A stretch of 64,000 nt of DNA from Macrostomum lignano (GCA_002269645.1 NIVC01003084.1:1-64000); one strand, 5' to 3'; positions 30,134 through 63,694 are shown, counted from the stretch's first letter. Translations and numbers: made by a program. The notes: a model not told the origin generated them from the sequence alone.

Positions 30134-32561
30134 ATGTTGGGCAAGGCGGCTTTGCTGCTCAAACAGCAGCAGCCTACGCTGTTGCAGTCCTCCGCCCTGC
30201 CTCAGATGCCGCAGCCAGCTGGCATCGGTGTGTCGGCCCCACTCCGCGGCAGCCAGTCCTTTCTGCTGCCGCAGCCGGCCGGCGGCCCATCGCCGCCATC
30301 GACGCCGCCCACGCGTCCGGCGAGCAGCTCCTGCTGGTGCCAACTCAGCTGCCGCTTGGCGCCCGCGTCGCCTCTGTGCCAGCCGACCTTGTTGCCAGGA
30401 TGATTGGCTCCGACCAGAAGCGTATCTCGGTTATCGTTATGCCAACCGGACATCTCATGCTGGCCGACGCCATGGCGCTGCCGGCCGGGCTGACTGGCGA
30501 TGCTGACTGCGCGGCCAACGCAGCCGCTGTGGCCGCCGCCGCCGCGGCCGTGGCCAGCCGAGCCGGCCCACCAGCGCCCAGCGAGTCCATCAACCTGGTC
30601 CGCAGCAGCGATCAGCAGCCGATCTCTTTAGTGAAAACTGAAGCCGAGTTGCCAGCTAGCACCGGCAGTCACGATGAAGATTGCGACGAAGGCGAGCTGT
30701 CGCTGGAGGAGCTGAGCCGCCGGCCGGACCTGCATCGCAGCGTTGTAGACGGCGTCGATCTAAACGAGATTGGCCAATTTGCGCGCGAATTCAAACTGCG
30801 CCGGCTGCGGCTGGGCCTGACGCAGACTCAGATTGGCGCCGCACTGTCTGCCGCCAGGGGACCCGCCTACAGTCAGAGCGCAATATCCCGCTTTGAGAAG
30901 CTGGATGTGACGCCCCGCTCTGCTGCCCGCATCAAGCAGGCCCTGCAGGCCTGGCTCGTCGAGGCTGAGGAATCCGCCGCCCTGTTGCCGCCAGATGAAG
31001 TCGCTGACGGCTCTGTCGATGCCACGGCCGCCGCTTCCTTGATAGGTGACGACGACGAAATGAAAGAGGCCGACCGGACCGCCGCAACTGAATCGACAGA
31101 CGCCGGGAGCATCGATGAAGATCCGGCGCCAGCTGCTGATCCAGCCGAGCAGCCGCCGCCGCCACCAGTCCAGGCGTCCGGCGACTGTGGAAGCGACGGC
31201 GCTGCCTGCGTCGGCTCCGGCAAGCGGCCTCGGAAGCGTCGAACTTCGTTCACACCGGAGGCTCTGGAGGCGCTGAACAGCTACTTCGAATTGAATCGGC
31301 ACCCGAGCGGCGCCGAGGTCACCCAGCTGGCGCGGGCTCTGCGCTACAGCCGCGAGGTCATCCGGGTCTGGTTTTGCAACCGGCGCCAGGCTCTGCGCGC
31401 CAACACCGTCAAGCGGCTGCGGCCACCCGTCGCCGTTACCAGCTCCGCCGCCGCTGCTGCTGCTGTTGCCGCCGCCGCTGCTGCCGCGGTGGCAGCGTCT
31501 TCGTCGGCTTCGTCCGTGTCGTGCACCGCCGCTGCGTCGGCTGCTGGTCCGACATCGTCGCCTTCACCGTCAGATTCGCCGGTGAACCTTTGCCAGCACC
31601 AGGCACCCGCGGCAGCGCTGGCAGCCTTAGCTGTGAGTTGGCGAGCCCGTGGGTGGTTTTCCGGGCTCAAATTGAGTAGTTGGGGTTCGAATTCATATCC
31701 GTCAAGAGCCCAATGCCCAAGGCAAAATATTAAGTGTCCCACTCATGCCCTTCTAGCCAAAAACATTAGCACGTGTGCTTTACGAGAATAAGTAGATATG
31801 TCAATTGCGAAAATGCGCTAGTCTACTTTTGCAGTAGCAAGATTAGTGTTTTAGCTTAGTTTTGAAAGCTGCAACAATCGCCTCTGGCTTTCCACCCATT
31901 TCTACTCCAGACTGTCTCAGACACGAAATTTTCTGAGAATGATAAAAAAATATTTTTTGAGTCCAATTTTAATCGACTAGAGATTGTAGGAAAACTTCAA
32001 AAACCCAAATCCAGTGCGTGTGCATAGCGAGCAAGAAAGAAAAAGGGTGGCGCCCCAGGCCCCAGTCAGGCCGATAAACATTTAGACTCTCTCCTGTGCT
32101 CTCATTGGCTGAGGTACTCGTAGATTGGGCCTTGCTTCTTCGCAGAGTTTCGTCCGTCTAAATTTGACCTCTCTCCTTACTGCTCTCTCATTGGCTGAGC
32201 TAGATTGGGCCTGCCCCCTAGGCCCTAGGCTGAGTTTCTTCCATCTGAATGACCTCTCTCCTTACTGCTCTCTCATTGGCTGAGCTAGATTGGGCCCGCC
32301 CCTAGGCTGAGTTTCGTCCATCTGACTGAACTCTCCTTACTGCTCTCTCATTGGCTGGGCTAGATTGGGCCTGCCCTTGGCTCGTTACTGGTTCTTAACC
32401 CCATTCGCTCCCTAGTTGAAAGAAAAGAATACTCGTAGAACAATAAAATCTAAAAAAACCGCCCGTGCAATCATTCCCCGCAGGTTCCCCAATCTTCGTC
32501 ACCAGCCTCCGTGTCGAGCACGCCGACAACCCCGCCTCTGCGGATGGCGAATATTGTTTAA
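30134..32561 (+). CDS. POU6: POU class VI transcription factor (POU6F-like), 2 coding exons, probable 1-nt frameshift at ~30287
   Basis: POU-specific domain FAREFKLRRLRLGLTQTQIGAALSAARGPAYSQSAISRFEKLDVTP and homeodomain RKRRTSFTPEALEALNSYFE...VIRVWFCNRRQ, diagnostic of POU6. Exon 1 30134-31632 (donor GTGAGT); exon 2 32484-32561 (VPQSSSPASVSSTPTTPPLRMANIV*). The N-terminal join and exon 2 are inferred. Confidence 0.88.
32085..32375. repeat. ~70-bp degenerate repeat with paired ATTGG (CCAAT) motifs, 4 copies, POU6 intron
   Basis: CTCTCATTGGCTGAGCTAGATTGGGCC recurs four times. Confidence 0.85.
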
Positions 32562-34533: not shown

Positions 34534-37500
34534 CTAACTGGCGGAGGCTGAGGTGGCAGCGGCCCGCATCTGGCGGAGGGTCTCGTGGCAGCGGGCGCAG
34601 ACGCGCACCGGCTCCCGGTATTGTGGCGGCAGCGGGGCGCTGTGCGACGAGCACTCGGCGCAGAACACTTCGCCGCAGTTTCGGCAGTGATGCTGAAGCA
34701 ATGTTGGCGGTATGAATATAACGAATAAGATGCTTTATAGTACTTTTAAGTAGCATATAATAAATGGTCTGATGAACCTTCTGACTTTTCCGGATGAATT
34801 TCGGGCTATAGTGATGAGTGTACATTGGCTTCATTGTACGTGTTATCATTTACTTCGGCATCAGTGCTTGCTAGTCCACAGCTTGCACGCCATACTCATT
34901 TTGCCACGGGTCAGAGCGCGAGTCCTCACTCACAGCATTGTAAAAATAACAATCGCGCGCTCACCCGTCGCAGCGTGAGGCTGAACATCTTCTCGCACTT
35001 GCTGCACTGCTTGGCCTGGTCGTCGCGCACCCAGACCGACTGCGGGTGGTCTCCTGCGACACCTGCAGCCGCTGATTGTCCCGGCCAATGTCCAGCAGCG
35101 CCGACTGCAGCTCCTCCAGTTGGCGCCGCTGCTCGGCTAGCTCCCGGTTGAGCCGGTCGCGCTCGTCAGCGTCCACTATGAGGCGCTCGGTGAGGCGGCG
35201 CTTCTCCTCGTCCAGCTCGTCCACTTGGCGCTCGCTCTCTGAATAGTAATTACAGCTTGCTACTCGCGTGATGCTACTGGGGAGTAGTCAGACAGACTGG
35301 GAGGGTCTGTATTTCTACCGCAGCTCAGAGCTGCTGCCCAATCACAGCAGGGCGAACTGCAGCTCAGCTTAATTTGTCACTCGCTCACTGCGGCTGAATT
35401 TAGAAGTGACGCAAGCTGTCTATTCAGCTGCATACAAACCCTATGTAGTCATGTAATGAAATCATTACTATTGTGTCTGAGTCAGACAGACGAATAAGCC
35501 AGGTGGCAGGAACCTCACCCTTCTTAGCGACCTCAGCAGCCTCAGTCAGGCGCTGAATCTCCGCCCGCATTGACTCCGCCGCTTTGCCAGCCTCCGCCAG
35601 ATCGGCCTCCGCAGTGGAGAGCCGCTCAGCTCCCTGCAGCTGCTCCGTCTCCTGCAGCAGTTAATTGCAACAATGCAAAATGATAGAGATTAGCCAATCA
35701 GCAATCAGCTGGGCAGCCCGATTGCACTCACGCATTTCAGCCGCAGTTCTCTGAGCTCTGCATCTCGACCGTCCCGTTCAGCCTCTGTGGCAGCCAGCTG
35801 TTCAGCGAGTTTCGCCAGCTCGGCCGCTTTGATGTCAACCGATTCGCGCAGACTCCCTTCAGACTGTTGCAGCGATTCGATGCTTGCCGACAGCTCTGAC
35901 ACTCGCTGCGGGTGTGGCCATTCCGATTGACCAATCAGAGAGATGCTAAAGGGAAGCCTCAATAATCACTGACCAATCAGAGAGAAGCTAAAGGGAAGCC
36001 TCATTAATCACTGACCAATCAGAGAGAAGCTAAAGGGAAGCCTCATTAATCACTGACCAATCAGAGAGAAGCTAAAGGGAAGCCTCATTAATCACTGACC
36101 AATCAGAGAGAAGCTGAAGGGAAGCCTGCTAATCTCCCATGTACTAGCAAAGGCGCCCGCGGTTCACGTTACTCACCTGTTCAAGCTCCTCATGCCGAGC
36201 AGCCGCCAGATCCAGCTGCTCTCGCGACTGCGCCAACTCCGATGTCAGACGATCGTTGGCGGCAGATGTCTCGGCTAGCTTTGTTGTCAGAGAGTCCCTC
36301 TCCTGACAGGCTGTTGCCAACTCCTGACGAGTGCCAGTCAGCTCACTGGTCAGCGAGTCCCGCTCCTGACAGGCTGTCGCCAACTCCTGACGAGTGCCAG
36401 TCAGCTCACTAGTCAGCGAGTCCCGCTCCTGACAGGCTGTCGCCAACTCCTGACGAGTGCCAGTCAGCTCACTAGTCAGCGAGTCCCGCTCCTGACAGGC
36501 TGTCGCCAACTCCTGACGAGTGCCAGTCAGCTCACTAGTCAGCGAGTCCCGCTCCTGACAGGCTGTCGCCAACTCCTGACGAGTGCCAGTCAGCTCACTA
36601 GTCAGCGATTCCCGCTCCTGACAGGCTGTCGCCAACTCCTGACGAGTGCCAGTCAGCTCACTAGTCAGCGAGTCCCGCTCCCGTTCGAGTCCCGCAACTT
36701 TCTTCTGCGCAGATGTCAGCTCCTCCGTCAGCGAGTCCCTTTGCTGACAGAGTTCATTAAACTCCCGACGCGAACTTTCTAGCTGCAATACAATCGAATC
36801 CCGCTCTGCACTGATTTTGTTGGCTTCCTCGCGAACCGAGGCAACATTTTCAGCTAGCGAGTCCCGCTCCTGCACCAGCTTATCCAAATCCGAGCGAGTG
36901 GCAGCTAAATCCGCTGTCAGCGAGTCCCGCTCCTGCACCAGCTTATCCAAATCCGAGCGAGTGGCAGCTAAATCCGCTGTCAGCGAGTCCCGCTCCTGCA
37001 CCAGCTTATCCAAATCCGAGCGAGTGGCAGCTAAATCCGCTGTCAGCGAGTCCCGCTCCTGCACCAGCTTATCCAAATCCGAGCGAGTGGCAGCTAAATC
37101 CGCTGTCAGCGAGTCCCGCTCCTGCACCAGCTTATCCAAATCCGAGCGAGTGGCAGCTAAATCCGCTGTCAGCGAGTCCCGCTCCTGCACCAGCTTATCC
37201 AAATCCGAGCGAGCAGTCGTCAAGTCTGCTGTCAGCGAGTCCCGCTCCTGCACCAGCTTATCCAAATCTGAGCGAGCGGCAGCTAAATCCGCTGTCAGCG
37301 ACTGGCGAGTTGCATTTAACTCAGTTGTCAGCGCGTTAATTTCTAAGCGCGCGCTGCTCAAATCGGCTGCTAGGGAGTCGCGCTGGCCTGAGAGGCTGTC
37401 TGCCCTCTGTCTGCCGGTCTCGGCTTCAGCGGCCGCATCCGCCAGACTGGCTTTCAATTCGGCCAGCTCTGCCTGCGGAATAAAATCACACAAGAGCGCT

Positions 37501-40500
37501 AATTACAAGCTCACACAGGGTGTACGCGGCCTTGACTTTCTATTCGTCAGACATGTACACCCTGTGCCTCGGGGGCTGGCAAGTTTGCGTGCACAAGCCC
37601 CAAATGAATGTGGCCGCGCAGGGGTCGTGGCGCGAGAGTCGGATGACCAACTTTGCTCCTTGCTAATTAGACTACTGACAGTAACAGTACTGAATTTGTT
37701 TCGTAATTTTGTAGTTCCTCGTATTCTTACCTCGTGCTTCTCGCGAGCGGCAGTTAGCGAGTGCTCCAATTTCTGAAGCTTCTTCTGCTGCTTGGCCATT
37801 GACTTGCTCTGCTCCTGCTCAAGGTGGACAAGTCAAGGTCAATACTATTGTTAACCGGAACTGAGCCCTGCTGTAATGCTGTACTAACCGCTCACCTGCT
37901 TTTCAGACTCCAGCTGGCTGGCGCTGCTCTTCAGCGCGTCCAGCTCCTCGGCCAGCCGGCCCTGCATCGACTCCGCCGTCTGGATCGTCTCAGTCGCATC
38001 GGCCAGTCGCCGCTCGGCCTGGTCGGCCCGATCTCTCTGGCCGGACACAGCGGAGCGAAGCTCTCCGCAGGAGGCCTCGGCCGCCGCTAGTCGCGTCCGC
38101 AGGTCCTCGGCCAAGCCGTCCAGCTCGCGCTCTCGACTGGCGGACTCGGCTGCCTCGGCAGCGGACTCCGACTGCAGCCGATCGATTTTGTCGGCTAGCA
38201 GCCGCTCCAGGTCGCATTTTTCATTGTAGGCCGTCTGGCTGGCCGATAGCTGCTGGCGCACTTCGGACAGAGTCTGCAGGAGTAGCGGAGGCAAGAGTCT
38301 CACTATATGAGATCCTTGAGTCTCACTGAGATCCTTGAGTCTCACTATATGAGATCCTTGAGTCTCACTATATGAGATCCTTGAGTCTCACTATATGAGA
38401 TCCTTGAGTCTCACTGAGATCCTTGAGTCTCACTATATGAGATCCTTGAGTCTCACTATATGAGATCCTTGAGTCTCCACTTGAGACAACCTCACCTGTT
38501 GCAGCCGTTGCGTTTCCTCTTCGCGACTGGCCGCTGCATCGGCCGCCTCGCGTCTCAGCGCTTCGATTTGCGCCTCCGCCTCGGTGCGCGCGTCGCGCTC
38601 GGCGGCCGCCTCGGCCCGTCGGTTCGACAGCTCGTCGGATAGCTGGCGCTCGCGATCCTCGGCGGCGCGAGATGAAGCTTCCAGCTGCCGTTGAGATGGG
38701 ATTATTTTAGAAAATTTAATACCAGTGGCTGTATTACTCATGGGTGCGATCTATCAGCTGCGTACTAACCGCGGCCAAATCAGCTTAACTTTCAGGGCTG
38801 ATTCTGGTTGAGTACTGAAAACAAATAATTTTTTCAGCTTCACTTCAACAGCCTAGTGGGGAACGCAAAGTCTAGCGCAGGCATAGTTAGACAGTTGAAG
38901 CGCTAACCTGAGCCTGCAGTCCGTCAGCTTTCTGGCGCAGCTCAGTCAGCTCAGCGGTCAGCTTGGCGTGCTCCTGCTCCGACTGAGCTGCTTTCTCTCT
39001 GAGCAGTTGGCAGTTCTGTAGGTAAGAAATAGAAAATACGACTGTGGGTGTTTCTTACAGTTTCTAGGGCATCTAAGGGCATTACGCAAATCTAAGGAAA
39101 TGACAATGACAACGCTAACCCGCATAGATTTGCCCAGCGTATCCATTGCCTCCTCCAAGCTGGCCTGCGTCCGAGCCGTCTCGGCCTCCGCGTCAGCTCT
39201 GGCCGACTCCGCCGACCTGGCGGCCTCCTTTGCCTCGGCCAGGCCGGCTTCAAGACTGGCCAGCTCGCTGCGCAGGCAGTCCGCCTGCTCCTCCAGGTTG
39301 GCCGCGATCGCCTCCCGCTCGGCTAGCAGGCGCGCAGTGGCCGCTTCGCGCTCTCGCGCCTGCTTAGCCCGCGCCGCCTCCGCCTCCGCCTCTGTCGCTG
39401 AATTGGCCGCCAGCTCGGCCGCCATTCGAGTCTCGGCTAGCTCAGCGGCCAGCGCCTCCCGAGCGGCCCGCTCGCTGGCCAATCTGGCGCGGGATTCGTC
39501 GCGCTGTCGCGCCAATTCGCGCTCCTGCGCCTGCGCCGCCGCCGTCAGCCTGGCGATCTCGTCGTCGCGCTGGCGCAGCCGCTGGGCCTCGGCGTGCCGC
39601 GACTCCTCGCGAATGGCCGCCGCCTGCCTGTCGAACTCCTGGCGCATCTCGCCGGCCTGCTGGCTGGCCCGCTCCTCTGTGGCCGACACGCGGCGTCTGG
39701 CGTCCTCAAGCTCGGCGCGCAGGCGACCAAGTTCTGAGTCTTTGCTGCGATAAGACGCAAATTTTGAGCACAGATATTTGAATATTTTATTTGAAAAACT
39801 AGTGTCTATGATGGCACTTTGATATCGAAAGACGAGATTTCGCGAGAAGCTGGCCGATGAGGTTTTAGGATCTACGATGGGATCTCTTAAGACAATAGGA
39901 TTTGGGATTTAAGACAATAGGATTTGGGAATTTAAGACAATGGGATTTGGGGATTGAAGATAATAGGATTTTGGGATCTAAGACAATGGGATTTGGGGAT
40001 CTAAGACAATGGGATTTGGGGATCTAAGACAATGGGATTCAGGGATCTAAGACAATGGGATTTGGGAATTTAAGACAATGGGATTCGGGGATCTAAGACA
40101 ATGGGATTCGGGGATCTAAGACAATGGGATTCGGATATGTTTCAATGAAATTTCGGGATCCAAGTCGATACAACAATTTGTCATCTAAGACGCTGCGAGC
40201 TCGGTTTCTAAGATGATGAATATCTTAAGATCTTAATTGAGGTTTAGAGCTTCTCCAAAACCCCCATGTGCATGTACTCGTAAGTGTATTAGGATCCCCC
40301 ACATGGCAACAGACGCCGAGAAGTCCTGTACCTGGCCAAGATGTCGCGGGACTCGGCCTCCTTGGCGGTGGCGGCCTCGGCGGCGGCCAGCTCCACAGCT
40401 GCCAGCCGGTGCTGCAGTTCGGCGCGCAGCTCCTCGATTCGCGCCTCGGCCGCCTGTTCAGCCGAGCGCTGATTGGCCGCGCTGTCATCCTGCAGCTGCC

Positions 40501-43500
40501 GGCGGAGCTGCTGGAGCTCCGCGTCTTTCCTGGGAGAGGATGGACGGGCTTTTGAAATCCTATCTGGGGGATAATTGGGTTCAGAATCCCATCTGTGGAT
40601 TATAGGGTTCGAAATCGCATCTGGAGGATTATAGGGCTCAGAATCCTATCTGGGGGATTATAGGGTTCAGAATCCCATCTGGGGGATTATTGGGTTCAGA
40701 ATCCCATCTGGGGGATTATAGGGCTCAGAATCCCATCTGGGGGATTATAGCTGGGTTCAGAATCCCATCTGGGGATTATAGGGTTCGAAATCGCATCTGG
40801 GGAATTATAGGGCTCAGAATCCCATCTGGGGGATTATAGGGTTCATAATCCCATCTGGGGGATTATAGGGTTCAGAATCCCATCTGGGGGATTATTGGGT
40901 TCAGAATCCCATCTGGGGGATTATAGGGCTCAGAATCCCATCTGGGGGATTATAGCTGGGTTCAGAATCCCATCTGGGGATTATAGGGTTCGAAATCGCA
41001 TCTGGGGAATTATAGGGCTCAGAATCCCATCTGGGGGATTATAGGGTTCATAATCCCATCTGGGGGATTATAGCTGGGTTCAGAATCCCATCTGGGGATT
41101 ATAAGGTTCGAAATCGCATCTAGAGGATTATAGGGCTCAGAATCCCATCTCAGAATCCCATCTGGGGATTATAGGGTTCAGAATCCCATCTGGGGATTAT
41201 AGGGTTCAGAATCCCATCTGGGGGATTATAGGGTTCAGAATCCCATCTAGGGATTATAGGGTTCAGAATCCCATCTGGGAGATTATAGGGTTCAGAATCC
41301 CATCTGGGGATTATAGGGTTCAGAATCCTATCTGGGGGATTAAGTTTCAAAATCGTATCTGTGGATTACTGTGGTAGATTCCCTACAGACTCAATACCAA
41401 TAGGCAGTCAAACACTGAGAGTCTCACTGCTGCCGCAGCTCCTGCAGTTTGGTCTCCATATCGGTGGCCAGAGATTTGCGCAGCTCCTGCAGTTTTCTAG
41501 CCGACTCGATGCCAGCATCTTCTAATCGGGTCTGCAGCTCTGCGCTGGCCTGCTTCAGCTCTTGAACCTGCTGACGGTGCCTGCATGTCGTTGTTTAAAT
41601 ATTTCGGGTTTTTTCCAGTTTCTTAGAAAGTGGATTCATCCTCAGCGCAGAAATCGCATGAGAAAATGTCTCACTTTTGACTGGCATTCTTAGCTCTGAG
41701 CTCGATGGCCTGTTTCTCCTCGGTTAGGGCTTTCACGGCTCGCTCGGACTCGCTAAATTGATGGGTTGAAATTACATAAGACTAATTAAATAAAATAAGA
41801 AACTAATAAAATAAAATAACGCTTACTCTGCCTTAGCTTGCAACTCAGAGCGCAGCGATTCAATCTCTTTGTCGCGACTGAAAGCGGCAGTTTAAAAATA
41901 GACACAAGTATAACAGAGGCGACACTTTATTAACTATAGTAAATGGATAACTATCGTATGAACTACCGTTTGATTTCACTGTCAGCCTTTTGTTGGCTGC
42001 TCTGCTTTTCCGACATCAGATTCTTCAGGGCTTCATCAGCGGACCTGCAATATTTTGAACATTTACGCCGCATGAAGGCTGAAGTTTGTTGAATAGCCAA
42101 GTTTTGCTGCGTAGCAAAGTAAGAATAGATGCGGGAGTGAGTCTGGGTGAGAGGTGGGGGAAGGAGGGTGACAGGTGAGAGAGAAGGAAAGGCAGATATA
42201 GAGTGGGAGAGGAAAGCTCCTTTCGAGGAGAGGGAGACGGGGAGGTGAGAAGAAGAGAGAAGGAGAGAAAGAGGGGAGACGTAGAGGGAGGGGAAGGAGA
42301 GAGAGAGGGAGAAGAGAGGAAGGGGAGTGGGAGAGGTAGATGGAGAGGGAGGAGGGGTAGAGGTAAAGGAATAGGGAGGGGAGAGGGAGTGAGAGGGTGA
42401 GAGGTAGGAGGAGAGGTAGAGGGAGGGTGAGAGGTAGGTGGAGAGGGAGGAGGAGAGGTAGAGGGAGGGTGAGAGGTAGATGGAGAGGGAGGAGGAGAGG
42501 TAGAGGGAGGGTGAGAGGTAGATGGAGAGATAGGAGGAGAGGTAGAGGGAGGGTGAGAGGTAGATGGAGAGGGAGGAGGAGAGGTAGAGGGAGGGTGAGA
42601 GGTAGATGAGAGGTAGGAGGAGAGGTAGAGGGAGGGTGAGAGGTAGATGGAGAGGGAGGAGGGGTAGAGGTAAAGGAATAGGGAGGGGAGAGGCAGAGGG
42701 AGGGTGAGAGGTAGATGGAGAGGGAGGAGGAGAGGTAGGGGAGGGTGAGAGGTAGATGGAGAGGGGGAGGGTGAGAGGTAGATGGAGAGGGAGGAGGGGT
42801 AGAGGTAAAGGAATAGGGAGGGGAGAGGCAGAGGGAGAGGGAGTGGGAGGGTGAGAGGTAGATGGAGAGATAGGAGGAGAGGTAGAGGGGGAGGGGATGA
42901 TGGAGCAGAAGAATCGAAAGGACAGAAGAGAGGTAAGAAGCGAGGTGGACAGTGCAGCATGGCAGCGCAGCATGTCAGTGCAGCACTTCTCTTACCCAGA
43001 CTTGGATTGCAACTCAGTGGTGAGCGATTCGATTTGTTCCTCTTTCCTGCAAATAAACAGCGCACAAAGATTTCCGATTAGCTAAAATAAAAGAAAGTCA
43101 GTGAAATTTATCTACTCATCAAACCTTTGAATTTCTTCGTCGGCGATTCTCTCCGACTCAAGCTTCTCAGCGGCCAGTTGTTTCAGGGACTGCTCGGCGG
43201 CGCTGTAAAATAGGGCGATGAAAGTAATTAAAGCTTACCTTCAATAATAATTAGGCATGCAATAAAAATAATCCTTCTGTACACTTCAATGAAATCCGCA
43301 CTCACTCGAGCTTGGCCAGCAGCTTTTGTTTCAACTTTTCGATCGCTTGGTCTTTTCTGAAAAGAAAAAAGTACACGAAAAACTTTGATTGCTTGCATTA
43401 GTGAGAACATTTTTAAGAAAGCATAAAGCCACGTCGCATCAAACAGACTTATCACTGGTTTCTTTGAGCCGCTTCTCTAACGCTTGCTTCTCGTCAGAAA

Positions 43501-46500
43501 GTGTTTTCAAGGCTTTGTCAGCAGAGCTGAAATATAAGTAGGGTAATTTTATATAATAAAGCCCCGATACTAGTGTCTTCACAAGTGGCGCTAAAACTGG
43601 TGTCTTCACAAGTGGCGCTAAAACTGATGTCTTCACAAGTGGCGCTATAACTGGTGTCTTCACAAGTGGCGCTAAAACTAGTGTCTTCAAGTGGCGCTAA
43701 AACTAGTGTCTTCAAGTGGCGCTAAAACTAGTGTCTTCAAGTGGCGCTAAAACTAGTGTCTTCAAGTGGCGCCAAAACTAGTGTCTTCAAGTGGCGCTAA
43801 AACTAGTGTCTTCAAGTGGCGCCAAAACTAGTGTCTTCAAGTGGCGCCAAAACTAGTGTCTTCAAGTGGCGCTAAAACTAGTGCCTTAAACTCTTTAAGC
43901 AGTACTTACTCAGACTTCGATTTGAACTCCGCTCTAAGCGCCTCAATAGTCTGTTGTGCACTGAAAAGGAGGTCGAACTGAAACCAATGTAAAATTAGCA
44001 TAATCAAAATTGAAAAGTTGAAATTCCAAAAAAGCCAGTCGGTACCGCTGTTTCTCAGCCTCGGCTGCAGATTCAATCGATTGCTTGCTCTCAGTCAGAC
44101 TGCTTAGAGCATGTTCGGCTGAGCTGAAATGAAAAGATGATATCAATTTGAAATGCATTGTTTTAAGTAAGTTAATAAATATACTAATAGTTACACTGTA
44201 CTCATTCATGCTCACTTTAATTTCGATTGCAGCTCAGCATTTTTCTTCGCCAACTCCTGGTCACGTCTGCAATATTAAAGTGATTATTTTCTCATAAAAC
44301 TAAGCGTGAACAGATAAAAGAAAATTCAATATCACGGTTTCAAAACAGTACTTTGTAGAATCCTCTTGTAATTTCTCTAGTGCCAGTCGCTCAGTGGCCA
44401 GACTCCGTTGCGCTTCATCTGCGCAGCTGAAAGTAAATTAGTTTATTAATTTTTACATCGGCATGTAGCTATGCATAGCAATTTTAGATATATTTAGATA
44501 GCTTGAAATTGAGTGGATCACGGGTAGGGGAAACTTGGAGAGATTAGATCACAGGTAGGAGATACCTGGAGAGATTAGATCACAGGTAGGAGATACCTGG
44601 AGAGATTAGATCACAGGTAAGGAATACATAGAAAGATTAGTTCACAGGTAGGGATTCCTGGAGAGATTAGATCACAGGTAGGAGATACCTGGAGAGATTA
44701 GATCACAGGTAAGGAATACATAGAAAGATTAGTTCACAGGTAGGGATTCCTGGAGAGATTAGATCACAGTTAGGAGATACCTGGAGAGATTAGATCACAG
44801 GTAAGGAATACATAGAAAGATTAGTTCACAGGTAGGGATTCCTGGAGAGATTAGATCACAGTTAGGAGATACCTGGAGAGATTAGATCACATGTAAGGAA
44901 TACATAAAAAGATTAGATCACAGGTAGGGATTCCTGGAGAGATTAGATCACAGGTAGGGGACACCTGGGAGTGAGTGGATCAGGTGGGGCACAAGTAAAA
45001 TTATTGAAAAAGTTTGGCATGCTATTGAATATTGTTGAGTCCTACTTTGATTTCAACTGTAGATCCGCTCTAACAGCATGCAATTGTTCGTGATGTCTGA
45101 AAAAAAAACAAGATAAAAATGAACAGCATAGTTGATCAAGTAGGCTTAGGCTTAACTATCTCCCCAACTGACACCGCGACTTGCCTCTGCCGCTCGTCCG
45201 CCAGAGAGCACTCAAGCGACTGTTTCTGTTCGGTTAGGCACTGGATCTCCTGTGCGGCAGTACTAAAATTAGCATAACTTAACTTTGAAAAAGATAATAG
45301 CGATGTGAAGTGTACACAATTTACTAAGGTTTTTGGTTGAACTCACTCTGAAGAGGACTGAATCTCGGCCTTAAGGGTAACAATAATTTGATCCTTTCTA
45401 AAAATGTGTTTTAGTTTGCGGGTGCGAGAAATAACAATAACAGTGAGTGTGGGTGTGAAAGACTGCCGGTGAAAGAGTGACAGTGAGTGTGGGTGTGAAA
45501 GACTGCCAGTGAAAGAGTGACAGTGAGTGTGAAAGAGTGACAGTGAGTGTGAGTGTGAAAGACTGCCGGTGAAAGAGTGACAGTGAGTGTGGGTGTGAAA
45601 GACTGCCGGTGAAAGAGTGACAGTGAGTGTGAAAGAGTGACAGTGAGTGTGGGTGTGAAAGACTGCCAGTGAAAGAGTGACAGTGAGTGTGGGTGTGAAA
45701 GAGTGACAGTGAGTGTGGGTGTGAAAGACTGCCGGTGAAAGAGTGACAGTGAGTGTGGGTGTGAAAGAGTGACAGTGAGTGTGGGTGTGGAAGAGTGACA
45801 GTGAGTGTGGGTGTGAAAGACTGCCAGTGAAAGAGTGCCAGTGAGTGTGGGTGTGGAAGACTGCCAGTGAAAGAGTGACAGTGAGTGTGGGTGTGAAAGA
45901 CTGCCGGTGAAAGAGTGACAGTGAGTGTGGGTGTGGAAGACTGCCAGTGAAAGAGTGACAGTGAGTGTGGGTGTGAAAGACTGCCAGTGAAAGAGTGACA
46001 GTGAGTGTGGGTGTGAAAGACTGCCAGTGAAAGAGTGACAGTGAGTGTGGGTGTGGAAGACTGCCAGTGAAAGAGTGACAGTGAGTGTGGGTGTGGAAGA
46101 GTGACAGTGGGTGTGGGTGTGGAAAACTGCCGGTGAAAGAGTGACAGTGAGTGTGGGTGTGGAAGACTGCGGGTGAAAGAGTGACAGTGTGGGTGTGAAA
46201 GACTGCAAGTGAAAGAGAGGAAGTGACTGTGAATGCGAGAGTGAATACAACACACAGCAGGAGCAGAAATACACCGCCATAGCTCACTCAATCAGTTTTT
46301 CATTCAACTCGGCCAAAGCGGCTGCGGCAGCTTTAGATTCATCATCCGCCTTATCCTGTTTATCAGTAGCGTCCAGCTTCACTCCCGTCCTGATGAAGTC
46401 ACTATTCAGATCGGGAGGTATCTCAATGTCAGCGAAACTTGCCAACCCGTTGCTGGTAGCAGCGGCTGACTCGGCAGTGTTGGACTAGGAGATATTGCAG

Positions 46501-48530
46501 GGAAGGCCGGCCAGTTACTATAGTTACTACATGTATATGCCTGGCATTACTGAATAGTCTAGGTCTGAAGGCTAATTTAACCCATCGGCTGTCTTTAAAG
46601 AGTTAAGTGTAGTGACACTGTAGTGTCAGTGTCACTGTAGTGTCACACGCTGTGATCTCTATCTTCTCTCTCTCTCTGCCCTGACGAAGAGTAAGTAACT
46701 GAAAATATCGACAACTGTAACTATATAGACTTTTATTAGTCTTTTTACCGTGTCAGAGTCTAAGATTGGAGGTGCCCTCATCTCCCCTCTCGCTCTAACT
46801 TGCTTGCCCTTTTCTGTCAATGCCTATGTCTATGGGCAAGACCAAATCTACTGCCAGCAAATGGGACGTCTCAACTTGGCTGACAAAAGCAATACTTGAA
46901 AACACATGGATTGCTAATCTGAGCATGCTATTGCCATACACAAAATACCTCAGCCAAGTCCTGAACCTGCTGCAGCAGCTCCGCTCTAAGCTGCTCAATA
47001 GTGTCGCACAATGCGCGCTCCTTCTGGCTGAATTCTTCTACTAAGACTTGCTTCTCTTGGCTGGCCGCTGTCAGTTGCTCGTCAAGCTGCTGAGCCACTG
47101 GATAAAAATCAATCAAGAAGCAATATAAATAAACAATAAACAACTGGACAATATAAATAAAAAAGTTTTAAAAAAGCAACAAATGACAGACTTAATAAAA
47201 GACTTACTCAGAGTTTTACTTTCATTAGAAGCCATCAATTGCTGTTCAAGCAAGAATATCTCCTCTGAGGCCTGGGGTAGGTTTTATTAGTTATAAAATT
47301 GAGTTCACAAATCACATTAATGTCAGTTGTCAGCAAGGCACTCACGTGACTGTTGTTGGCCGCAGCGGATCCCGCGCTGGCCAGCCGCTGGTTGAGCTCC
47401 GCGTTCTCCAATCGCAACTGTTGGACAGTCTTAACTAGTTCGGCCACGCTCTCTGCTTTGTTGGCCTGCTGCTGGTTCAGTGTGCGGTCGAACCTGCATT
47501 AGCGTCAGAAGCATTGATTCGTTGGTGAAATAGGTAAGCCTCTTCTGTGTGTAAATGTTGAAATCCACTGTTTTCAACTCCAACCCCCTGCGACACTAAC
47601 CTCACACCCCACTGTTATATTCCTACCCCCTGCGACACACCTCACGCCCCAGTGTTCTTTCCTATCCTTTGCGAGTCACCCACCTCACACCCCCTGTGTT
47701 ATATTCCTACCCCCTGCGAGGCACCCACCTCACGCCCCTTCCTACCCCCTGCGAGGCACCCACCTCACGCCCCAGTGTTATATTCCTACCCCCTGCGACA
47801 CACCTCACGCCCCAGTGTTCTTTCCTATCCTTTGCGAGTCATCCACCTCACGCCCCCTGTGTTATATTCCTACCCCCTGCGAGGCACCCACCTCACGCCC
47901 CCTTCCTACCCCCTGCGAGGCACCCACCTCACGCCCCAGTGTTATATTCCTACCCCCTGCGACACACCTCACGCCCCAGTGTTCTTTCCTATCCTTTGCG
48001 AGTCACCCACCTCACGCCCCCTCTGTTATACTCCTACCCCCTGCGAGGCACCCACCTCACGCCCCCAGTGTTATATTCCTACCCCCTGCGAGGCACCCAC
48101 CTCACGCCCCAGTGTTATATTCCTACACCCCTGCGAGGCACCGCCACGCCTTATTATTGAGTTCAACAGACATTTTTAGCCTTAGACAGAATGCAAAAGC
48201 TACAAAAGCTTCTACTAACATAACGTTAGCCTCGGCAGTGACCAACGCCGGCACAGAATTTCCAATTGCAGCAGTTGAAGGCGAAGCGGTAACGGCTGGC
48301 TGTTCCGGCTCGCCAGCCGAATGCGCGGCGGCAAAGTGATGCGTGAGAGCCTCGGCCGTGCCGAACTTAATTATACAGGTGGGACAGACAAATCCTTCAA
48401 CCTGCGACGACACGGTGCTGGGCCCCGAGGAGTTGCCGGAGGTTCTCTGCGCGCCAGCATCGTTGCCGGCGGAACTGCCACTTCCGGCCTGCGATTTAGG
48501 CTTGGCCTTTTTTAACAGGTTGGACAGCAT
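34534..48530 (-). CDS. EEA1: Early endosome antigen 1-like tether: N-terminal C2H2 finger, long coiled coil, C-terminal FYVE; 31 exons, ~1840 aa
   Basis: Exons: 48530-48220, 47493-47346, 47271-47220, 47097-46949, 46484-46288, 45397-45347, 45262-45185, 45096-45046, 44426-44352, 44266-44216, 44123-44046, 43960-43910, 43526-43449, 43356-43306, 43202-43125, 43046-42996, 42044-41967, 41877-41827, 41752-41675, 41580-41428, 40529-40332, 39744-39120, 39015-38908, 38684-38496, 38273-37896, 37814-37731, 37472-36177, 35905-35732, 35651-35519, 35238-34965, 34692-34534. Phases are consistent except for a 1-nt deficit in exon 30. Motifs [14 protein letters not shown] and [24 protein letters not shown]. Confidence 0.88.
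35925..36125. repeat. 42-bp intronic repeat (CACTGACCAATCAGAGAGAAGCTAAAGGGAAGCCTCATTAAT), ~4.5 copies
   Basis: 42-bp periodicity. Confidence 0.92.
36295..37300 (-). repeat. Two coding 63-bp (21-aa) tandem repeat blocks in EEA1 exon 27
   Basis: [21 protein letters not shown] x~7 (~36857-37300) and [21 protein letters not shown] x~6 (~36295-36680). Confidence 0.95.
38295..38480. repeat. 23/19-bp intronic repeat (GAGTCTCACTATATGAGATCCTT), ~8 copies
   Basis: Direct tandem. Confidence 0.93.
39885..40135. repeat. 22-23-bp intronic repeat (TAAGACAATGGGATTTGGGGATC), ~11 copies
   Basis: Direct tandem. Confidence 0.93.
40550..41360. repeat. ~29-bp intronic repeat (CAGAATCCCATCTGGGGGATTATAGGGTT), ~28 copies
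   Basis: Direct tandem; each unit has an AATCCC/GGGATT inverted pair. Confidence 0.95.
42165..42900. repeat. Purine-rich (GA) composite intronic repeat
   Basis: GAGAGGTAGAGGGAGGGTGAGAGGTAGATGGAGAGGGAGGAG units. Confidence 0.93.
43565..43885. repeat. 25/27-bp intronic repeat (ACTAGTGTCTTCAAGTGGCGCTAAA), ~12 copies
   Basis: Direct tandem. Confidence 0.94.
44505..44990. repeat. ~31-bp intronic repeat (GAGATTAGATCACAGGTAGGAGATACCTGGA) with 92-bp trimer structure
   Basis: The variant GGAATACAT recurs at 44621, 44713, 44805 and 44897. Confidence 0.94.
45438..46230. repeat. Composite ~40-bp intronic repeat (GACAGTGAGTGTGGGTGTGAAAGACTGCCAGTGAAAGAGT)
   Basis: Direct tandem with internal deletions. 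Confidence 0.94.
47590..48145. repeat. C-rich ~40-bp composite repeat in EEA1 intron 1 with ~164-bp higher-order unit
   Basis: CACCTCACGCCCC units; AGTGTTCTTTCC recurs at 47651, 47814 and 47978. Confidence 0.92.
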
Positions 48531-53122: not shown

Positions 53123-54481
53123 TCAAAGGTCATTGTTTATTTCAACATCGCCGCCGCCCTCGCTTCGATGAATCTTGGCGTGCTTGGCAAGACCTGAACA
53201 GTCGTAGAAGGCTTTGCCGCAGTCGCTGCACTCGAAAGGCCGTTCGCCAGTGTGCAGGCGCATATGCATGCGCAGGTAGTCTTTGCGAACGAATCGTTTA
53301 GCGCATACTAAGCAGACGTGTGGCTTCTTGCCCGTATGGTTGCGCATGTGACGCGCCAGGGCCGAGTTGTAGGAGAATCGCTGGCCGCAGCGGTTGCAGG
53401 AGAATGGCTTGACGCCGACGCCGCTGCTGGTGCCGATGCTCAAGCCGCTGACAGAGTTGGCTGCCAAGGACTGAGCGAGTCGCCGCTGGCGCTGCAGCGG
53501 ATCCAACGGACGAGAAAGTGGCGGAGGTGGAGGCCGCGGCGGTGGCGACGGCGGCGGAGGAGGTGACGGTGGCGACAGAGGCGGCAACAGAAGCTGCTGC
53601 GGAGGCGGAGGCGGTGACGGGGGAAGCTCGGGAGGCGGATGGGCGACAGCGGCGTGCCTGGCCAGGGAGGCCTCGTCGCGGAATCGCTTGCCACAATTTG
53701 GACAGGGCAGAAATCTTGGCGGCGGCAATGCCGAAGCGAGCGCATGCTGGCGCTGATGCTGCTGCTGCTGCCCCAGGCTGCCTCCAGCGGCTGCCGAGGA
53801 GTGCTTCTTCTGGTGCGCTTTCAGGTGTTCGCGGCGAGGAAAGCGCCGATCGCACAGGCTGCAGGCGTAAGGCATTTCGCCCGTGTGACTGCGCCGATGC
53901 CGGACCAGGCTGGACCTGGCCGTGAAGGTTTTGCCGCACTCGTTGCAGGTCAGGTGCTGCTGGCGCCGGCGCCCGAGGATGACAGCGCGCGGAGACTGCG
54001 GCATTTGCAACGGAGGCGGCGGCGGCGGAGGCGGTGATGGCGGTGGCATTGGCTGATGCTGCCGCGACAGTGACGGCGGCCGCTGGCCCTCTAGAAGCGG
54101 AGGCGGAGAAAGCGAAGGCTGCGGAGGCGGCGGCGGTGAAGCCGGACAATGCAGAGTCGACTGTTGCTGCTGCTGCTGCTGCTGTTGTTTTCGTTGTTGT
54201 TGTTGCTGTTGCTGCTGCAAGAGGCTGTCGTCTCCGTTGACGGCGAGCAGCTGGACCTCCAGCTCGGCCGCGGAGTCGGCGCACATCTCTAGGAAGCCCA
54301 GTCTGAGGCAGGGATCGTCGTCAAAGTCGCTGTTAGCCCAGGTGTTCCAGCACCCGATGCCCCAGGCAACGGAGACGTCGCCGTTGCCATCGCTGTCGCC
54401 GTCGCTATTAGCTGAATTGCCGTTGCCATGGTGACCGTTGACGGCCGGCAGTGGCGGCAACGATGGTTCGGTCTGGAACAT
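53123..54481 (-). CDS. C2H2 zinc-finger transcription factor (6 fingers, Pro/Gln-rich), 452 aa
   Basis: CNECGKTF..H..H TGEMPY CSLC..; CPNC..; CNRC.. TGKKPH CLVC.. TGERPF CSDC..; Kruppel-type linkers. Confidence 0.9.
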   Translation of the reverse strand: MFQTEPSLPPLPAVNGHHGNGNSANSDGDSDGNGDVSVAWGIGCWNTWANSDFDDDPCLRLGFLEMCADSAAELEVQLLAVNGDDSLLQQQQQQQQRKQQQQQQQQQSTLHCPASPPPPPQPSLSPPPLLEGQRPPSLSRQHQPMPPPSPPPPPPPPLQMPQSPRAVILGRRRQQHLTCNECGKTFTARSSLVRHRRSHTGEMPYACSLCDRRFPRREHLKAHQKKHSSAAAGGSLGQQQQHQRQHALASALPPPRFLPCPNCGKRFRDEASLARHAAVAHPPPELPPSPPPPPQQLLLPPLSPPSPPPPPSPPPRPPPPPLSRPLDPLQRQRRLAQSLAANSVSGLSIGTSSGVGVKPFSCNRCGQRFSYNSALARHMRNHTGKKPHVCLVCAKRFVRKDYLRMHMRLHTGERPFECSDCGKAFYDCSGLAKHAKIHRSEGGGDVEINNDL

Positions 54482-55956: not shown

Positions 55957-58900
55957 CTATCTAACAAAGTCCAGCACTAATTCCACGTGGCGGCAATTCG
56001 GGAACAGATCGATAGGCTGGCAGCTGGCCAATCGGAATGGCCGGCCCGAGCCTTCAGGCATCAGCAGGCGGAGGAAATTGTCGGTCGGCTGGCCCTCCGG
56101 CCGGCAGGAGATGTACACTATTCGGTCAACGGTCGGGCAGGCTCGGATTGCGGACACCGAGGCGTCGTCAAGGCCGTCGCGGGCCGGGTTCAGCACGCAG
56201 CAGACGCTGTCAGCAGAGAAGCAGCTGTCAATAGCTGACAGGCGATTAGCAAAGAAGGTGGCAGCGTCCTCGCAGTGATATTGAAATGCGTTGCTAGGCA
56301 ACCCGTTTAGCCTGGCGTTGTCAAGAGCGTCACGCACGGCGGACTGGTTGGAGTCGAAGCCGATTAGCTGGTCGAATTGCCGACTGTCGAACAGCACCTG
56401 GCCGACGACGCCGGTGCCGCAGAAGGCGTCTATAAGCAGACGGCGGCGTGGCGGCGATGACGGGGGCAGCTCCGCAGCCAGCAGCTGGCGCAGGTAGCCG
56501 TACAGGGTCTCAGCAGCTACCGTGTTGTTCTGAAAAAACGAATGCGGCCGAACTTTGAAGCGCCGGTCCAGCAGGCGCTGGTGCAGCGAGTCGCGGCCGA
56601 ATAGGTGTCGCGGCTCCACAGGCTGGAAGCAGTTACTGCTGGCCTGGCTGTAGCCAGACACCAGGTTGAGGCCGGAGCGGAGCACCGCCGGGAAGAACTG
56701 GCGAGTCTGCAAATTAACACGTTGACATGCTAGACTAGAAGCTTTACAGGCTCGAATTGCTATTGAGAGAGACTTTCCGATAGGACATAATAAAAACGGC
56801 ATTGAAATTGGCTCCAAATTTATTGTTAATTAGCAAATTTTCATGCACGGAAAGCTTATTACCGTTTTCCTTAGTTCCAGTCTAGGCATCAAGAAAGGGT
56901 CTGTAGCTAGACAGGGCATAGCTATCGAGAGGTAAGACCATAAGGAGGCCATGACCCCCCAATCGTCTGGAAAAGTAATTGACGCCCCTTTGTACTCCTT
57001 TGGCGCTCCTAGTGCTGGTGTCCCCTGGTGCTGGTGTCCCCTGGTGCTAGCGCCCCTGGTGCTGGCGTCCCCTGATGCTGGTGTCTCCTGACGCTGGTGT
57101 CCCCTGGAGCTGATGTCTCCTGGCGCTGGTGTCTCCTGGTGCTGATGTCTCCTGGCGCTGGTGTCTCCTGGTGCTGGTGTCCCCTGGTGCTGGCGCCCCT
57201 GGTGCTGGCGCCCCTGGTGCTGGCGCCCCTGGTGCTGGCGGCCCCTGGTGCTGGTGTCTCCTGGCGCTGGTGTCCCCTGGTGCTGGCGCCCCTGGTGATG
57301 GCGCCCCTGGTGCTGGCGCCCCTGGTGCTGGCGCCCCTGGTGCTGGCGCCCCTGGTGATGACGCCCCTGGTGCTGGCGCCCCTGGTGCTGGCGCCCCTGG
57401 TGCTGGCGCCCCTGGTGCTGGCGCCCCTAGTGCTGGCGCCCCTGGTGCTGGCGCCCCTGGTGCTGGCGCCCCTGGTGCTGGTGTCTCCTGGCGCTGGTGT
57501 CCCCTGGTGCTGATGTCTCCTGGCGCTGGTGTCTCCTGGTGCTGGTGTCCCCTGGTGCTGGTGTCCCCTGGTGCTGGCGCCCCTGGTGCTGGCGCCCCTG
57601 GTGCTGGCGCCCCTGGTGCTGGCGCCCTGGTGCTGGCGCCCCTGGTGCTGGCGCCCCTGGTGATGGCTCTGGTGCTGGTGTCTCCTGGTGCTGGTGTCCC
57701 CTGGTGCTGGCGCCCCTGGTGCTGGCGCCCCTGGTGCTGGCGCCCCTGGTGATGGCGCCCCTGGTGCTGGCGCCCCTGGTGATGGCTCTGGTGCTGGTGT
57801 CTCCTGGTGCTGGTGTCCCCTGGTGCTGGCGCCCCTGGTGCTGGCGCCCCTGGTGATGGCGCCCCTGGTGCTGGCGCCCCTGGTGATGGCGCCCCTGGTG
57901 CTGGCGCCCCTGGTGCTGGCGCCCCTGGTGCTGGCGCCCCTGGTGATGGCGCCCCTGGTGCTGGCGCCCCTGGTGATGGCGCCCCTGGTGCTGACGCCCC
58001 TGGTGCTGGCGCCCCTGGTGCTGGTGTCTCCTGGCGCTGGTGTCCCCTGGTGCTGATGTCTCCTGGCGCTGGTGTCTCCTGGTGCTGGTGTCCCCTGGTG
58101 CTGGCGCCCCTGGTGATGGCGCCCCTGGTGCTGGCGCCCCTGGTGCTGGCGCCCTGGTGCTGGCGCCCTGGTGCTGGCGCCCCTGGTGATGGCTCTGGTG
58201 CTGGCGCCCCTGGTGATGGCTCTGGTGCTGGTGTCTCCTGGTGCTGGTGTCCCCTGGTGCTGGCGCCCCTGGTGCTGGCGCCCCTGGTGCTGGCGCCCCT
58301 GGTGCTGGCGCCCCTGGTGCTGGCGCCCCTGGTGCTGGCGCCCCTGGTGCTGGCGCCCCTGGTGCTGGCGCCCCTGGTGCTGGCGCCCCTGGAGCTGGCG
58401 CCACTGGTGCTGGCGCCCCTGGTGCTGGCGCACAGTAAAATAAATTTCCCGCCACAAATTAACACTAGAGCTTCACCAAGTTAAGCAGAGTTGGTCTCGG
58501 TTAGTATGCACTTGAGTAGGTTTCTTGTGTTACTCCCCAATAAACGAGTGGCACATTAAACGGAGCTCAAGTCCACCCTGCTGGGATGGGGTATAGCAGC
58601 TCTGAGCTGACGTAGGCACACTGGGTGGCAGTTGTAGCCCCAACAGACATTTCTATCAACCGCACTAACCAGCTCAGACAGTAGCCGAGCCTCGGCCCCA
58701 GCTGGCAGCTGTCCGTGGTAGCAAACCTCCAGCATCAGCTCGTCATCGTGATTAGTCCTGGCAACCAGGCCGGCCCAGGCCCCGTCTGGTTTCCTATGCT
58801 TATCGTAGGGATCGAATTGACTCTGGCCGCTGCGCAGGAAATCGGTGAATAATTGAAATACTCTGGCGTGAATCGGGCAGGTGCTAGCCAGGTGTTCAAC

Positions 58901-60575: not shown

Positions 60576-61321
60576 GGCACTGACACTAAAAGACCCAGTT
60601 GGAGTGTAGCACTGGGACACTAAAAGACCCAGTTGGAGTGTGGCACTGACACTAAAAGACCCAGTTGGAGTGTGGCACTGACACTAAAAGACCCAGTTGG
60701 AGTGTGGCACTGACATTTAAAGACCCAGTTGGAGTGTGGCACTGACACTAAAAGACCCAGTTGGAGTGTGGCACTGACACTAAAAGACCCAGTTGGAGTG
60801 TGGCACTGACACTAAAAGACCCAGTTGGAGTGTGGCACTGACACTAAAAGACCCAGTTGGAGTGTGGCACTGACACTAAAAGACCCAGTTGGAGTGTGGC
60901 ACTGACACTAAAAGACCCAGTTGGAGTGTGGCACTGACACTAAAAGACCCAGTTGGAGTGTGGCACTGACACTAAAAGACCCAGTTGGAGTGTGGCACTG
61001 ACACTAAAAGACCCAGTTGGAGTGTGGCACTGACACTAAAAGACCCAGTTGGAGTGTGGCACTGACACTAAAAGACCCAGTTGGAGTGTGGCACTGACAC
61101 TAAAAGACCCAGTTGGAGTGTGGCACTGACACTAAAAGACCCAGTTGGAGTGTGGCACTGACACTAAAAGACCCAGTTGGAGTGTGGCACTGACACTAAA
61201 AGACCCAGTTGGAGTCTGGCACTGACACTAAAAGACCCAGTTGGAGTCTGGCACTGACACTAAAAGACCCAGTTGGAGTCTGGCACTGACACTAAAAGAC
61301 CCAGTTGGAGTCTGGCACTGA
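60576..61321. repeat. 32-bp array B1 (CTGACACTAAAAGACCCAGTTGGAGTGTGGCA), ~23 copies
   Basis: 32-bp periodicity; related to unit A. Confidence 0.97.
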
Positions 61322-61759
61322 TATAATAATTGAAGCGAATGAAGCCAACTGAAAGCCGTGTATAAACAATAAAATCACGATAGACGGCGTTCTGCAATTC
61401 GAAGCTATTGAAATCCGTGTAAACAGCGAATGGCCTGCTTATTAATACATTTTTAATACAAAAAATTGGAGACACGAAACAGATTACAAGAAAGACACAA
61501 AAAGACTGCCACAATTAACTGGAGTATAGAACATTAATTTTGTTAATAAATCTTTGCCTATTTTTATATTGATATTAGAGTAACTAAATCATTCATTTCC
61601 AAACATGCATAATAATTAACAGATGGAAATAAAAAACGGTAGAAAAAAATGGAAATGCTTTCCTCGTGTTTTTTCAAGAGAATTTAATAGTAAAGTTCAT
61701 TGTGCAACAGAATTAAGTATTGTTACCTTTTAGCATAATGAGTTAGCATAATTAGATAA

Positions 61760-62885: not shown

Positions 62886-63694
62886 GCACTGACACTAAAA
62901 GACCCAGTTGGAGTGTAGCACTGGGACACTAAAAGACCCAGTTGGAGTGTGGCACTGACACTAAAAGACCCAGTTGGAGTGTGGCACTGACACTAAAAGA
63001 CCCAGTTGGAGTGTGGCACTGACATTTAAAGACCCAGTTGGAGTGTGGCACTGACACTAAAAGACCCAGTTGGAGTGTGGCACTGACACTAAAAGACCCA
63101 GTTGGAGTGTGGAACTGACACTAAAAGACCCAGTTGGAGTGTGGCACTGACACTAAAAGACCCAGTTGGAGTGTGGCACTGACACTAAAAGACCCAGTTG
63201 GAGTGTGGCACTGACACTAAAAGACCCAGTTGGAGTGTGGCACTGACACTAAAAGACCCAGTTGGAGTGTGGCACTGACACTAAAAGACCCAGTTGGAGT
63301 GTGGCACTGACACTAAAAGACCCAGTTGGAGTGTGGCACTGACACTAAAAGACCCAGTTGGAGTGTGGCACTGACACTAAAAGACCCAGTTGGAGTGTGG
63401 CACTGACACTAAAAGACCCAGTTGGAGTGTGGCACTGACACTAAAAGACCCAGTTGGAGTGTGGCACTGACACTAAAAGACCCAGTTGGAGTGTGGCACT
63501 GACACTAAAAGACCCAGTTGGAGTGTGGCACTGACACTAAAAGACCCAGTTGGAGTGTGGCACTGACACTAAAAGACCCAGTTGGAGTCTGGCACTGACA
63601 CTAAAAGACCCAGTTGGAGTCTGGCACTGACACTAAAAGACCCAGTTGGAGTCTGGCACTGACACTAAAAGACCCAGTTGGAGTCTGGCACTGA
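62886..63694. repeat. 32-bp array B2, ~25 copies
   Basis: Same unit and same boundary variants as B1. Confidence 0.96.

Follow-up and report, generated by a model that had tools for sequence, protein, structure and literature searches.

On the minus strand of a 64,000-nucleotide (nt) stretch of Macrostomum lignano DNA (GCA_002269645.1 NIVC01003084.1:1-64000; hereafter the window), a gene resembling that for the tethering protein EEA1 contains a run of short exons that alternate between two lengths. The locus raises the questions of how this exon array arose and of whether its layout allows the length of the protein to be varied by splicing. A sequence-only reading of the window had described the array as a coiled coil built from seven tandem exon pairs and had proposed that it could encode a tether of splice-tunable length. 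Our analysis indicates that the array probably represents about 300 residues of the rod of the M. lignano EEA1 orthologue, derived from an ancient exon-pair duplication in which the introns were copied along with the exons.

Read from 45397 to 41675 on the minus strand, the array consists of 14 exons of 51, 78, 51, 75, 51, 78, 51, 78, 51, 78, 51, 78, 51, and 78 nt, as follows.

45347-45397, minus strand: array exon 1, short, 51 nt, phase 2-2 (splice signals, frame, and profile scan of the window)
45185-45262, minus strand: array exon 2, long, 78 nt with a GC donor (GAG/gcaagt) (splice signals and frame)
45046-45096, minus strand: array exon 3, short, 51 nt; the intron after it (619 nt) contains a 31/92-nt satellite
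44352-44426, minus strand: array exon 4, long, 75 nt, one codon less than the other long exons
44216-44266, minus strand: array exon 5, short, 51 nt
44046-44123, minus strand: array exon 6, long, 78 nt
43910-43960, minus strand: array exon 7, short, 51 nt; the intron after it (383 nt) contains a 25-nt satellite
43449-43526, minus strand: array exon 8, long, 78 nt
43306-43356, minus strand: array exon 9, short, 51 nt
43125-43202, minus strand: array exon 10, long, 78 nt
42996-43046, minus strand: array exon 11, short, 51 nt; the intron after it (951 nt) contains a GA-rich 42-nt satellite
41967-42044, minus strand: array exon 12, long, 78 nt
41827-41877, minus strand: array exon 13, short, 51 nt
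41675-41752, minus strand: array exon 14, long, 78 nt

A pyrimidine tract and ag lie upstream of each of the 14 exons, with the acceptors being uniformly good, and 13 of the donors are gt, mostly gtgag or gtaag. The first base of each exon is the third base of a codon and the last two bases open the next codon, so that the introns are all of phase 2. Splicing of the 14 exons yielded an open frame of 300 amino acids (aa) without interruption. The splice signals and this open frame thus bore out the description of 14 exons with alternating lengths and phase 2-2, although some details required correction. Thirteen exon lengths were as claimed, whereas that of exon 2, the one exception among the donors, is 78 nt only if its GC donor is used. 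This donor matches the standard extended consensus of GC-AG introns; a poorer GT donor (GGT/gtcagt, 45173) located 12 nt downstream gives an in-frame exon of 90 nt, which is the form adopted by the UniProt model A0A1I8JR04. The donor pair (45173-45184) is a possible alternative 5' splice site, with the longer form adding RQVA-type residues. The final residue assigned to the short exons, E, was an artefact of reading into the intron, the spliced product having mostly D or N at this position. Finally, the phase 2-2 run was correct as to phase but not as to length, given that two further exons of this phase follow.

41428-41580, minus strand: exon 15, 153 nt, phase 2-2, coiled coil, without significant similarity to the module
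40332-40529, minus strand: exon 16, 198 nt, phase 2-2, beginning with KDAELQQL like the short exons (similarity not significant, 9 bits)

The run therefore comprises 16 exons rather than 14, and exons 18 to 23 of the same gene are all of phase 0-0. We considered exon 16 and another flanking exon, N3, as relatives of the module, but their "IE.LRAEL" motifs scored only 8-9 bits and were not significant.

We next turn to the relation among the encoded peptides. For the 300 array residues, the BLOSUM62 autocorrelation at a lag of 43 residues was 1.12, compared with -0.21 +/- 0.12 for shuffled sequences (z = 10.8), and peaks were apparent at lags of 43, 86, 129, and 171/172. Given that composition alone could mislead in a coiled coil, we also performed a left-one-out test in which a profile derived from six modules was used to score the seventh. 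The omitted modules scored 20-46 bits, whereas the rest of the protein (~1,500 residues) scored no more than 3.6 bits. A six-frame scan of the whole 64-kilobase window with profiles for the short and long exons detected exactly seven short and seven long copies, and neither the long introns nor any other part of the window yielded decayed or hidden additional modules. Coiled coils are biased in composition and the modules share a pairwise identity of just 19-44%, so that their likeness might be thought to reflect composition only, with the exon pattern being coincidental. However, the rest of the protein, against which the omitted modules stand out, is itself mostly coiled coil, the autocorrelation peaks are sharp, and identical exon lengths and phases recur seven times over. 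On the basis of the autocorrelation, the left-one-out profiles, and the exact recovery of seven plus seven copies, we rejected this explanation, to which we assign almost no probability.

When the modules were compared with one another, identity was 0.50 at the first, 0.62 at the second, and 0.31 at the third codon position, compared with respective values of 0.28, 0.33, and 0.26 expected from composition. Third positions have thus been almost randomised between modules, whereas first and second positions have been kept, indicating that these are old copies whose protein-coding sequence has been maintained. Nucleotide identity between modules was ~55% for the exons versus ~49% for shuffled sequences, and short introns showed an alignment identity of 52-55% compared with 51% for shuffles and are therefore not alignable. 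The array thus consists of adjacent exons of equal length class and phase that encode homologous peptides, the pattern that defines a tandem exon-duplication array. The earlier claims that the seven 43-aa modules are homologous, that they originated by exon-pair duplication (with exon sizes, phases, and peptide homology all retained), and that the introns have diverged completely, to the level of random sequence, were all upheld. Given that two intron positions and their phases are common to all seven modules, the duplicated genomic DNA most probably already held both introns. We propose that the seven modules arose when a genomic unit of two exons (51 + 78 nt, or 43 aa), together with its two phase-2 introns, was duplicated in tandem long ago. 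Selection on the protein has kept the modules while synonymous sites and introns became randomised. A literature search for EEA1 together with exon duplication yielded no paper, and one for tandem exon duplication together with coiled coil yielded nothing relevant.

With the exception of three, the array introns are 74-103 nt in length; the other short introns of the EEA1-like gene measure 80, 81, and 104 nt. The three long introns, of 619 nt (44427-45045), 383 nt (43527-43909), and 951 nt (42045-42995), lie after exons 3, 7, and 11, so that satellite-bearing introns within the array recur after each fourth exon. Each is a short intron swollen by its own, different satellite; without the satellites, the three introns would be reduced to roughly 60-280 nt. 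The positions of these introns, as well as a module identity that is slightly higher at a lag of two modules (0.38) than at a lag of one (0.31), may be a trace of a four-exon (two-module) duplication unit or may be due to chance. However, the autocorrelation at lag 86 is below that at lag 43. Counting these three, nine introns of >220 nt, the majority of the gene's longer introns, bear satellites, with units of 23-45 nt and largely different sequences.

35928-36127, 38295-38486, 39888-40131, 40556-41368, 42227-42895, 43569-43887, 44516-44968, 45440-46217, and 47579-48142: intron satellites

Tandem repeats make up ~15% of the M. lignano genome (PMC5730564).

To which protein does the array belong? 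Chaining of splice-compatible exons yielded a gene model of 30 exons, the principal features of which, apart from the array, are as follows.

34534-48530, minus strand: EEA1-like gene, from an ATG at 48530 to a stop codon near 34537, ~1,820 aa (splice-consistent 30-exon model)
48318-48398, minus strand: N-terminal C2H2 zinc finger, predicted counterpart of the Rab5-binding finger of EEA1 (first exon; PDB match)
36177-37472, minus strand: exon 22, 1,296 nt, containing two young arrays of 63-nt units (21 aa, three heptads each) within its coding sequence
34965-35238, minus strand: exon 25, end of the rod and first half of the FYVE domain (WVRDD...RR), containing a 1-nt frame break
34534-34692, minus strand: exon 26, second half of the FYVE domain (HHCRNCG...RVC) and stop codon

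EEA1 is characterized by a zinc finger, a long parallel coiled coil, and a FYVE domain (PMC11676326), and the product of the gene model shows the same layout. The best match for its C2H2 finger (residues 43-74) among solved structures was EEA1 (3MJH_B, E=4.4e-5), with Pfam C2H2 models matching it only under their curated cut-off; the finger thus appears to be of the EEA1 type and is predicted to bind Rab5. Most of the stretches sampled from the central ~1,600 residues had a hydrophobic period of 3.50-3.64, and no Pfam domains other than the finger and FYVE were detected in the parts of the rod that were scanned. The last two exons scored 78.8 bits with the Pfam FYVE model, compared with a cut-off of 27.8. 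The C-terminal 121 residues, including the coiled coil that precedes FYVE, aligned without gaps to EEA1 1JOC (E=2e-28), the top PDB match, which outranked RUFY1, Hrs, and others. The architecture and these scores support the assignment to EEA1. In large protein collections, a search with the C-terminal query at a strict threshold of 1e-15 returned no EEA1 orthologues (there being few word candidates), and one with the full-length query returned only an unrelated FYVE-RhoGEF protein. Orthology therefore rests on the architecture and on the ranking among solved structures.

Human EEA1 consists of 1,411 aa. The flatworm protein shares with it (1JOC, 3MJH) the order of C2H2 finger, very long coiled coil, and C-terminal FYVE domain, the gapless last ~120 residues, and the WxxD, RRHHCR, and RVC motifs. 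It differs in being longer and in possessing a rod with three internal arrays, one comprising the seven 43-aa exon-pair modules, which are old, and two made of young 21-aa repeats within exon 22. The latter, at 36286-36681 (6.3 copies, 98% identity) and 36856-37301 (7.1 copies, 95% identity), represent recent expansion within that rod, unlike the ancient exon-pair modules. Repeat expansion has thus lengthened the rod on at least three separate occasions, one of them ancient and two recent. The assembled protein would be a long tether that engages Rab5 through its N-terminal finger and phosphatidylinositol 3-phosphate through its C-terminal FYVE domain, and the array most likely forms a fixed part of it.

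The FYVE motifs WVRDD, RRHHCR, and RVC can be read directly, but the domain is complete only after bridging of the 1-nt frame break in exon 25. This break is located at ~35037-35060, after LQVSQETT and just before the WxxD motif, and if a CCC run there is extended by one C, the protein again aligns to human EEA1 without gaps and with the same spacing. A frame break inside a FYVE-encoding exon might signify that the copy in the window is a decaying, nonfunctional EEA1 paralogue in which the array survives as a relic. Duplicated nonrepetitive blocks with an identity of at least 95% account for 180 Mb of the published assembly (PMC5730564), and A0A1I8JR04, which differs at a few residues, would be a second, slightly different copy. 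On the other hand, ~1,800 codons over the other 29 exons are open and the splice sites are intact, and a break that adjoins a CCC run and is repaired by a single C is typical of long-read homopolymer error. We therefore regard an assembly error as more likely than a real lesion, and a decaying paralogue as improbable.

Public records of the locus are few. A word-index search with a 350-aa array query retrieved only two fragmentary M. lignano UniRef models, A0A1I8JR04 and A0A1I8FP14, both of which are identical to the window across shared exons, in support of a flatworm origin of the sequence. An exhaustive HMMER search with A0A1I8JR04 against 1.84 billion representatives revealed nothing else credible and no detectable similarity to the rod sequence outside M. 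lignano; one candidate array relative, P0003 (E=5.6e-4), was rejected as an unrelated helical repeat protein. Look-up of the exact product found no other genomic copies or transcripts on record. One of the two public models, that which omits five array exons, is named "myosin class II heavy chain," a label that is a coiled-coil misannotation, and the other is garbled by frame errors. Given that the public M. lignano models of the locus are fragmentary, re-annotation of the gene as EEA1-like is needed.

We then examined what a 43-residue module entails for the coiled coil. The sequence-only reading had pointed out that 43 is not a multiple of 7 and that each module should therefore introduce a break in register. 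The hydrophobicity spectrum of the array showed a main peak at 0.280 per residue, corresponding to a period of ~3.57 residues (12/43 = 0.279), whereas the region of 21-aa repeats in the same protein showed a peak at 0.2855, corresponding to the period of 3.50 of a pure heptad pattern. A period of ~43/12 rather than 3.50 indicates that the non-heptad length of the module is visible in the sequence, in support of this prediction. A crude Viterbi trace of the heptad register broke at least once in six or in all seven of the seven modules, depending on the penalty, but the positions of the breaks were unstable, and we therefore relied on the Fourier peak and the column profile. Hydrophobic columns of the module are 5, 8, 12, 19, 23, 26, 33, and 37, with columns 16, 30, 41, and 1 being weaker or polar. 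The resulting core spacing, 3-4-4-3-4-3-4-3-4-4-3-4, provides 12 core repeats per 43 residues and can be read as three heptads plus two 11-residue units, with what would be two stutters and a net shift of one residue per module. Such a pair of stutters would leave this segment of the rod slightly underwound relative to a pure heptad coil. The two intron sites, between residues 17 and 18 and between residues 43 and 1, both lie within weak, polar stretches of the core. The rise of a coiled coil is ~0.148 nm per residue. At this value, each module would span ~6.4 nm and the array ~45 nm, if the coiled coil is continuous. The contour length of human EEA1 is 222 +/- 26 nm (bioRxiv 10.1101/2022.07.18.500463).

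Does the array allow the length of the tether to be adjusted? If exon pairs were skipped in a regulated manner, EEA1 isoforms would arise that contain fewer 43-aa modules and whose rods are shorter in steps of ~6.4 nm. All 14 array exons and the next two are of phase 2-2, so that any skip is in frame, and removal of whole modules leaves the 43-residue pattern intact. A gene-specific matrix scored the donors after long exons below those after short exons, and the sole public model of the region, A0A1I8JR04, which joins exons N4-2-5-8-9-10-11-12, lacks array exons 1, 3, 4, 6, and 7 and yet stays in frame. Against this, the public model is fragmentary and computational, and small exons, such as those of 51 nt, are easily missed; we therefore did not count it as evidence of skipping. 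The donor asymmetry was not significant with a generic consensus (p=0.13), and the acceptors do not differ in quality among the exons. Furthermore, the length of 23 of the gene's 28 internal exons is divisible by 3, so that frame symmetry is a trait of nearly the whole rod and a weak argument for tunability, and such symmetry is also an automatic by-product of exon duplication. Conservation is also apparent at the protein level in every module. The earlier claim that any exon can be skipped in frame thus holds for the reading frame, but the 43-residue pattern survives only the skipping of whole modules, with loss of a single 17- or 26-residue exon creating a new register break. Mutually exclusive exon use was also rejected, given that all exons are multiples of 3 and their joint inclusion is in frame; the array introns of 74-103 nt belong to the same size class as the other short introns of the gene, and nothing forces mutually exclusive use. 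Constitutive inclusion of all 14 exons, as the default, is most likely, and we consider regulated skipping to be unlikely.

Several points weigh against the interpretation of the array as a constitutively spliced, duplicated segment of an EEA1 rod. The junctions of the array exons and their constitutive inclusion are predictions from genomic sequence, and exon 2 has two candidate donors. The putative orthology is based on best matches among solved structures. The frame break in the FYVE exon raises the possibility that, in a genome that is partly duplicated, this copy is a paralogue that has been damaged rather than the working gene. In addition, most residues at core positions 16, 30, 41, and 1 of the module are polar, which makes the heptad and 11-residue (hendecad) reading one fit among possible ones rather than a determined structure.

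Genes with one repeat per exon that have arisen by tandem exon duplication include those for fibrillar collagens, with their 54-bp exons (and multiples thereof), as well as for nebulin and rods of the spectrin family. As in such genes, the flatworm repeat is encoded by exons of equal length and phase, the introns were coamplified and then diverged, and frame symmetry is a by-product. The present array differs in that its unit is an unequal pair of exons (17 + 26 residues), in that it encodes a two-stranded alpha-helical coiled coil, and in that the repeat length of 43 is not a heptad multiple. Cassette splicing sets protein length in the case of the Ig and PEVK exons of titin and of the central helical spacer that distinguishes h- from l-caldesmon. 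The flatworm array resembles these systems in having in-frame modular exons in an elongated protein, for which length isoforms are possible in principle; isoforms are evidenced for titin and caldesmon, whereas those of the flatworm array would be hypothetical. Coiled coils with stutters or hendecad insertions have also been described (Martinez-Goikoetxea & Lupas 2023, cited in PMC11676326). The array shares with them a hydrophobic period of >3.5 and a core that can be written with 3-4-4 units, but its departure from the heptad appears mild (about 3.57-3.58) and strictly periodic, with a predicted two 11-residue units per 43 residues.

Other features of the window lie outside the EEA1-like gene, with the gene for a POU-class transcription factor being located just downstream of it.

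30337-31791, plus strand: one open reading frame (ORF) with a POU domain and a homeodomain, POU-class transcription factor
18522-22607, plus strand: intact-looking Ty3/gypsy-type pol ORF, 1,361 aa (reverse transcriptase, RNase H, and integrase)
near 17990-18500 and 22570-22900: long terminal repeat-like flanks of the Ty3/gypsy ORF, with identical minus-strand translations
8443-10479, plus strand: HMG-box protein (Pfam)
13362-15173, minus strand: major-facilitator transporter (Pfam)
53123-54481, minus strand: multi-C2H2 zinc-finger protein (Pfam)
55957-56817, minus strand: methyltransferase-like ORF (Pfam)
61231-61514 and 63604-63887: identical ORF translations 2,373 nt apart, an apparent large direct repeat at the right end of the window

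The array is a lineage-specific variant of a well-known protein that was generated by a well-known process, tandem exon duplication. Current models of how endosomes are captured give a central place to the contour length and switchable stiffness of EEA1 (bioRxiv 10.1101/2022.07.18.500463). With regard to function, the modules might conceivably serve as a splice-selectable length ruler with steps of ~6.4 nm, or their periodic register breaks might act as built-in points of compliance; we put forward these roles tentatively and as being on the unlikely side. Such compliance points, with the two predicted stutters per 43 residues and the polar cores at both intron sites, might contribute to a transition like the Rab5-triggered stiff-to-flexible switch of human EEA1. 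The interest of the locus is moderate, given that the mechanics of the EEA1 rod are under active study, and as it stands the finding is a tidy result of annotation rather than a new mechanism. The locus nevertheless provides a clear case, in a coiled-coil protein, of two paired exons having been multiplied along with their introns, and a natural EEA1 rod that is so cleanly modular would be a convenient system with which to study the effects of rod length and register breaks on tethering and collapse.

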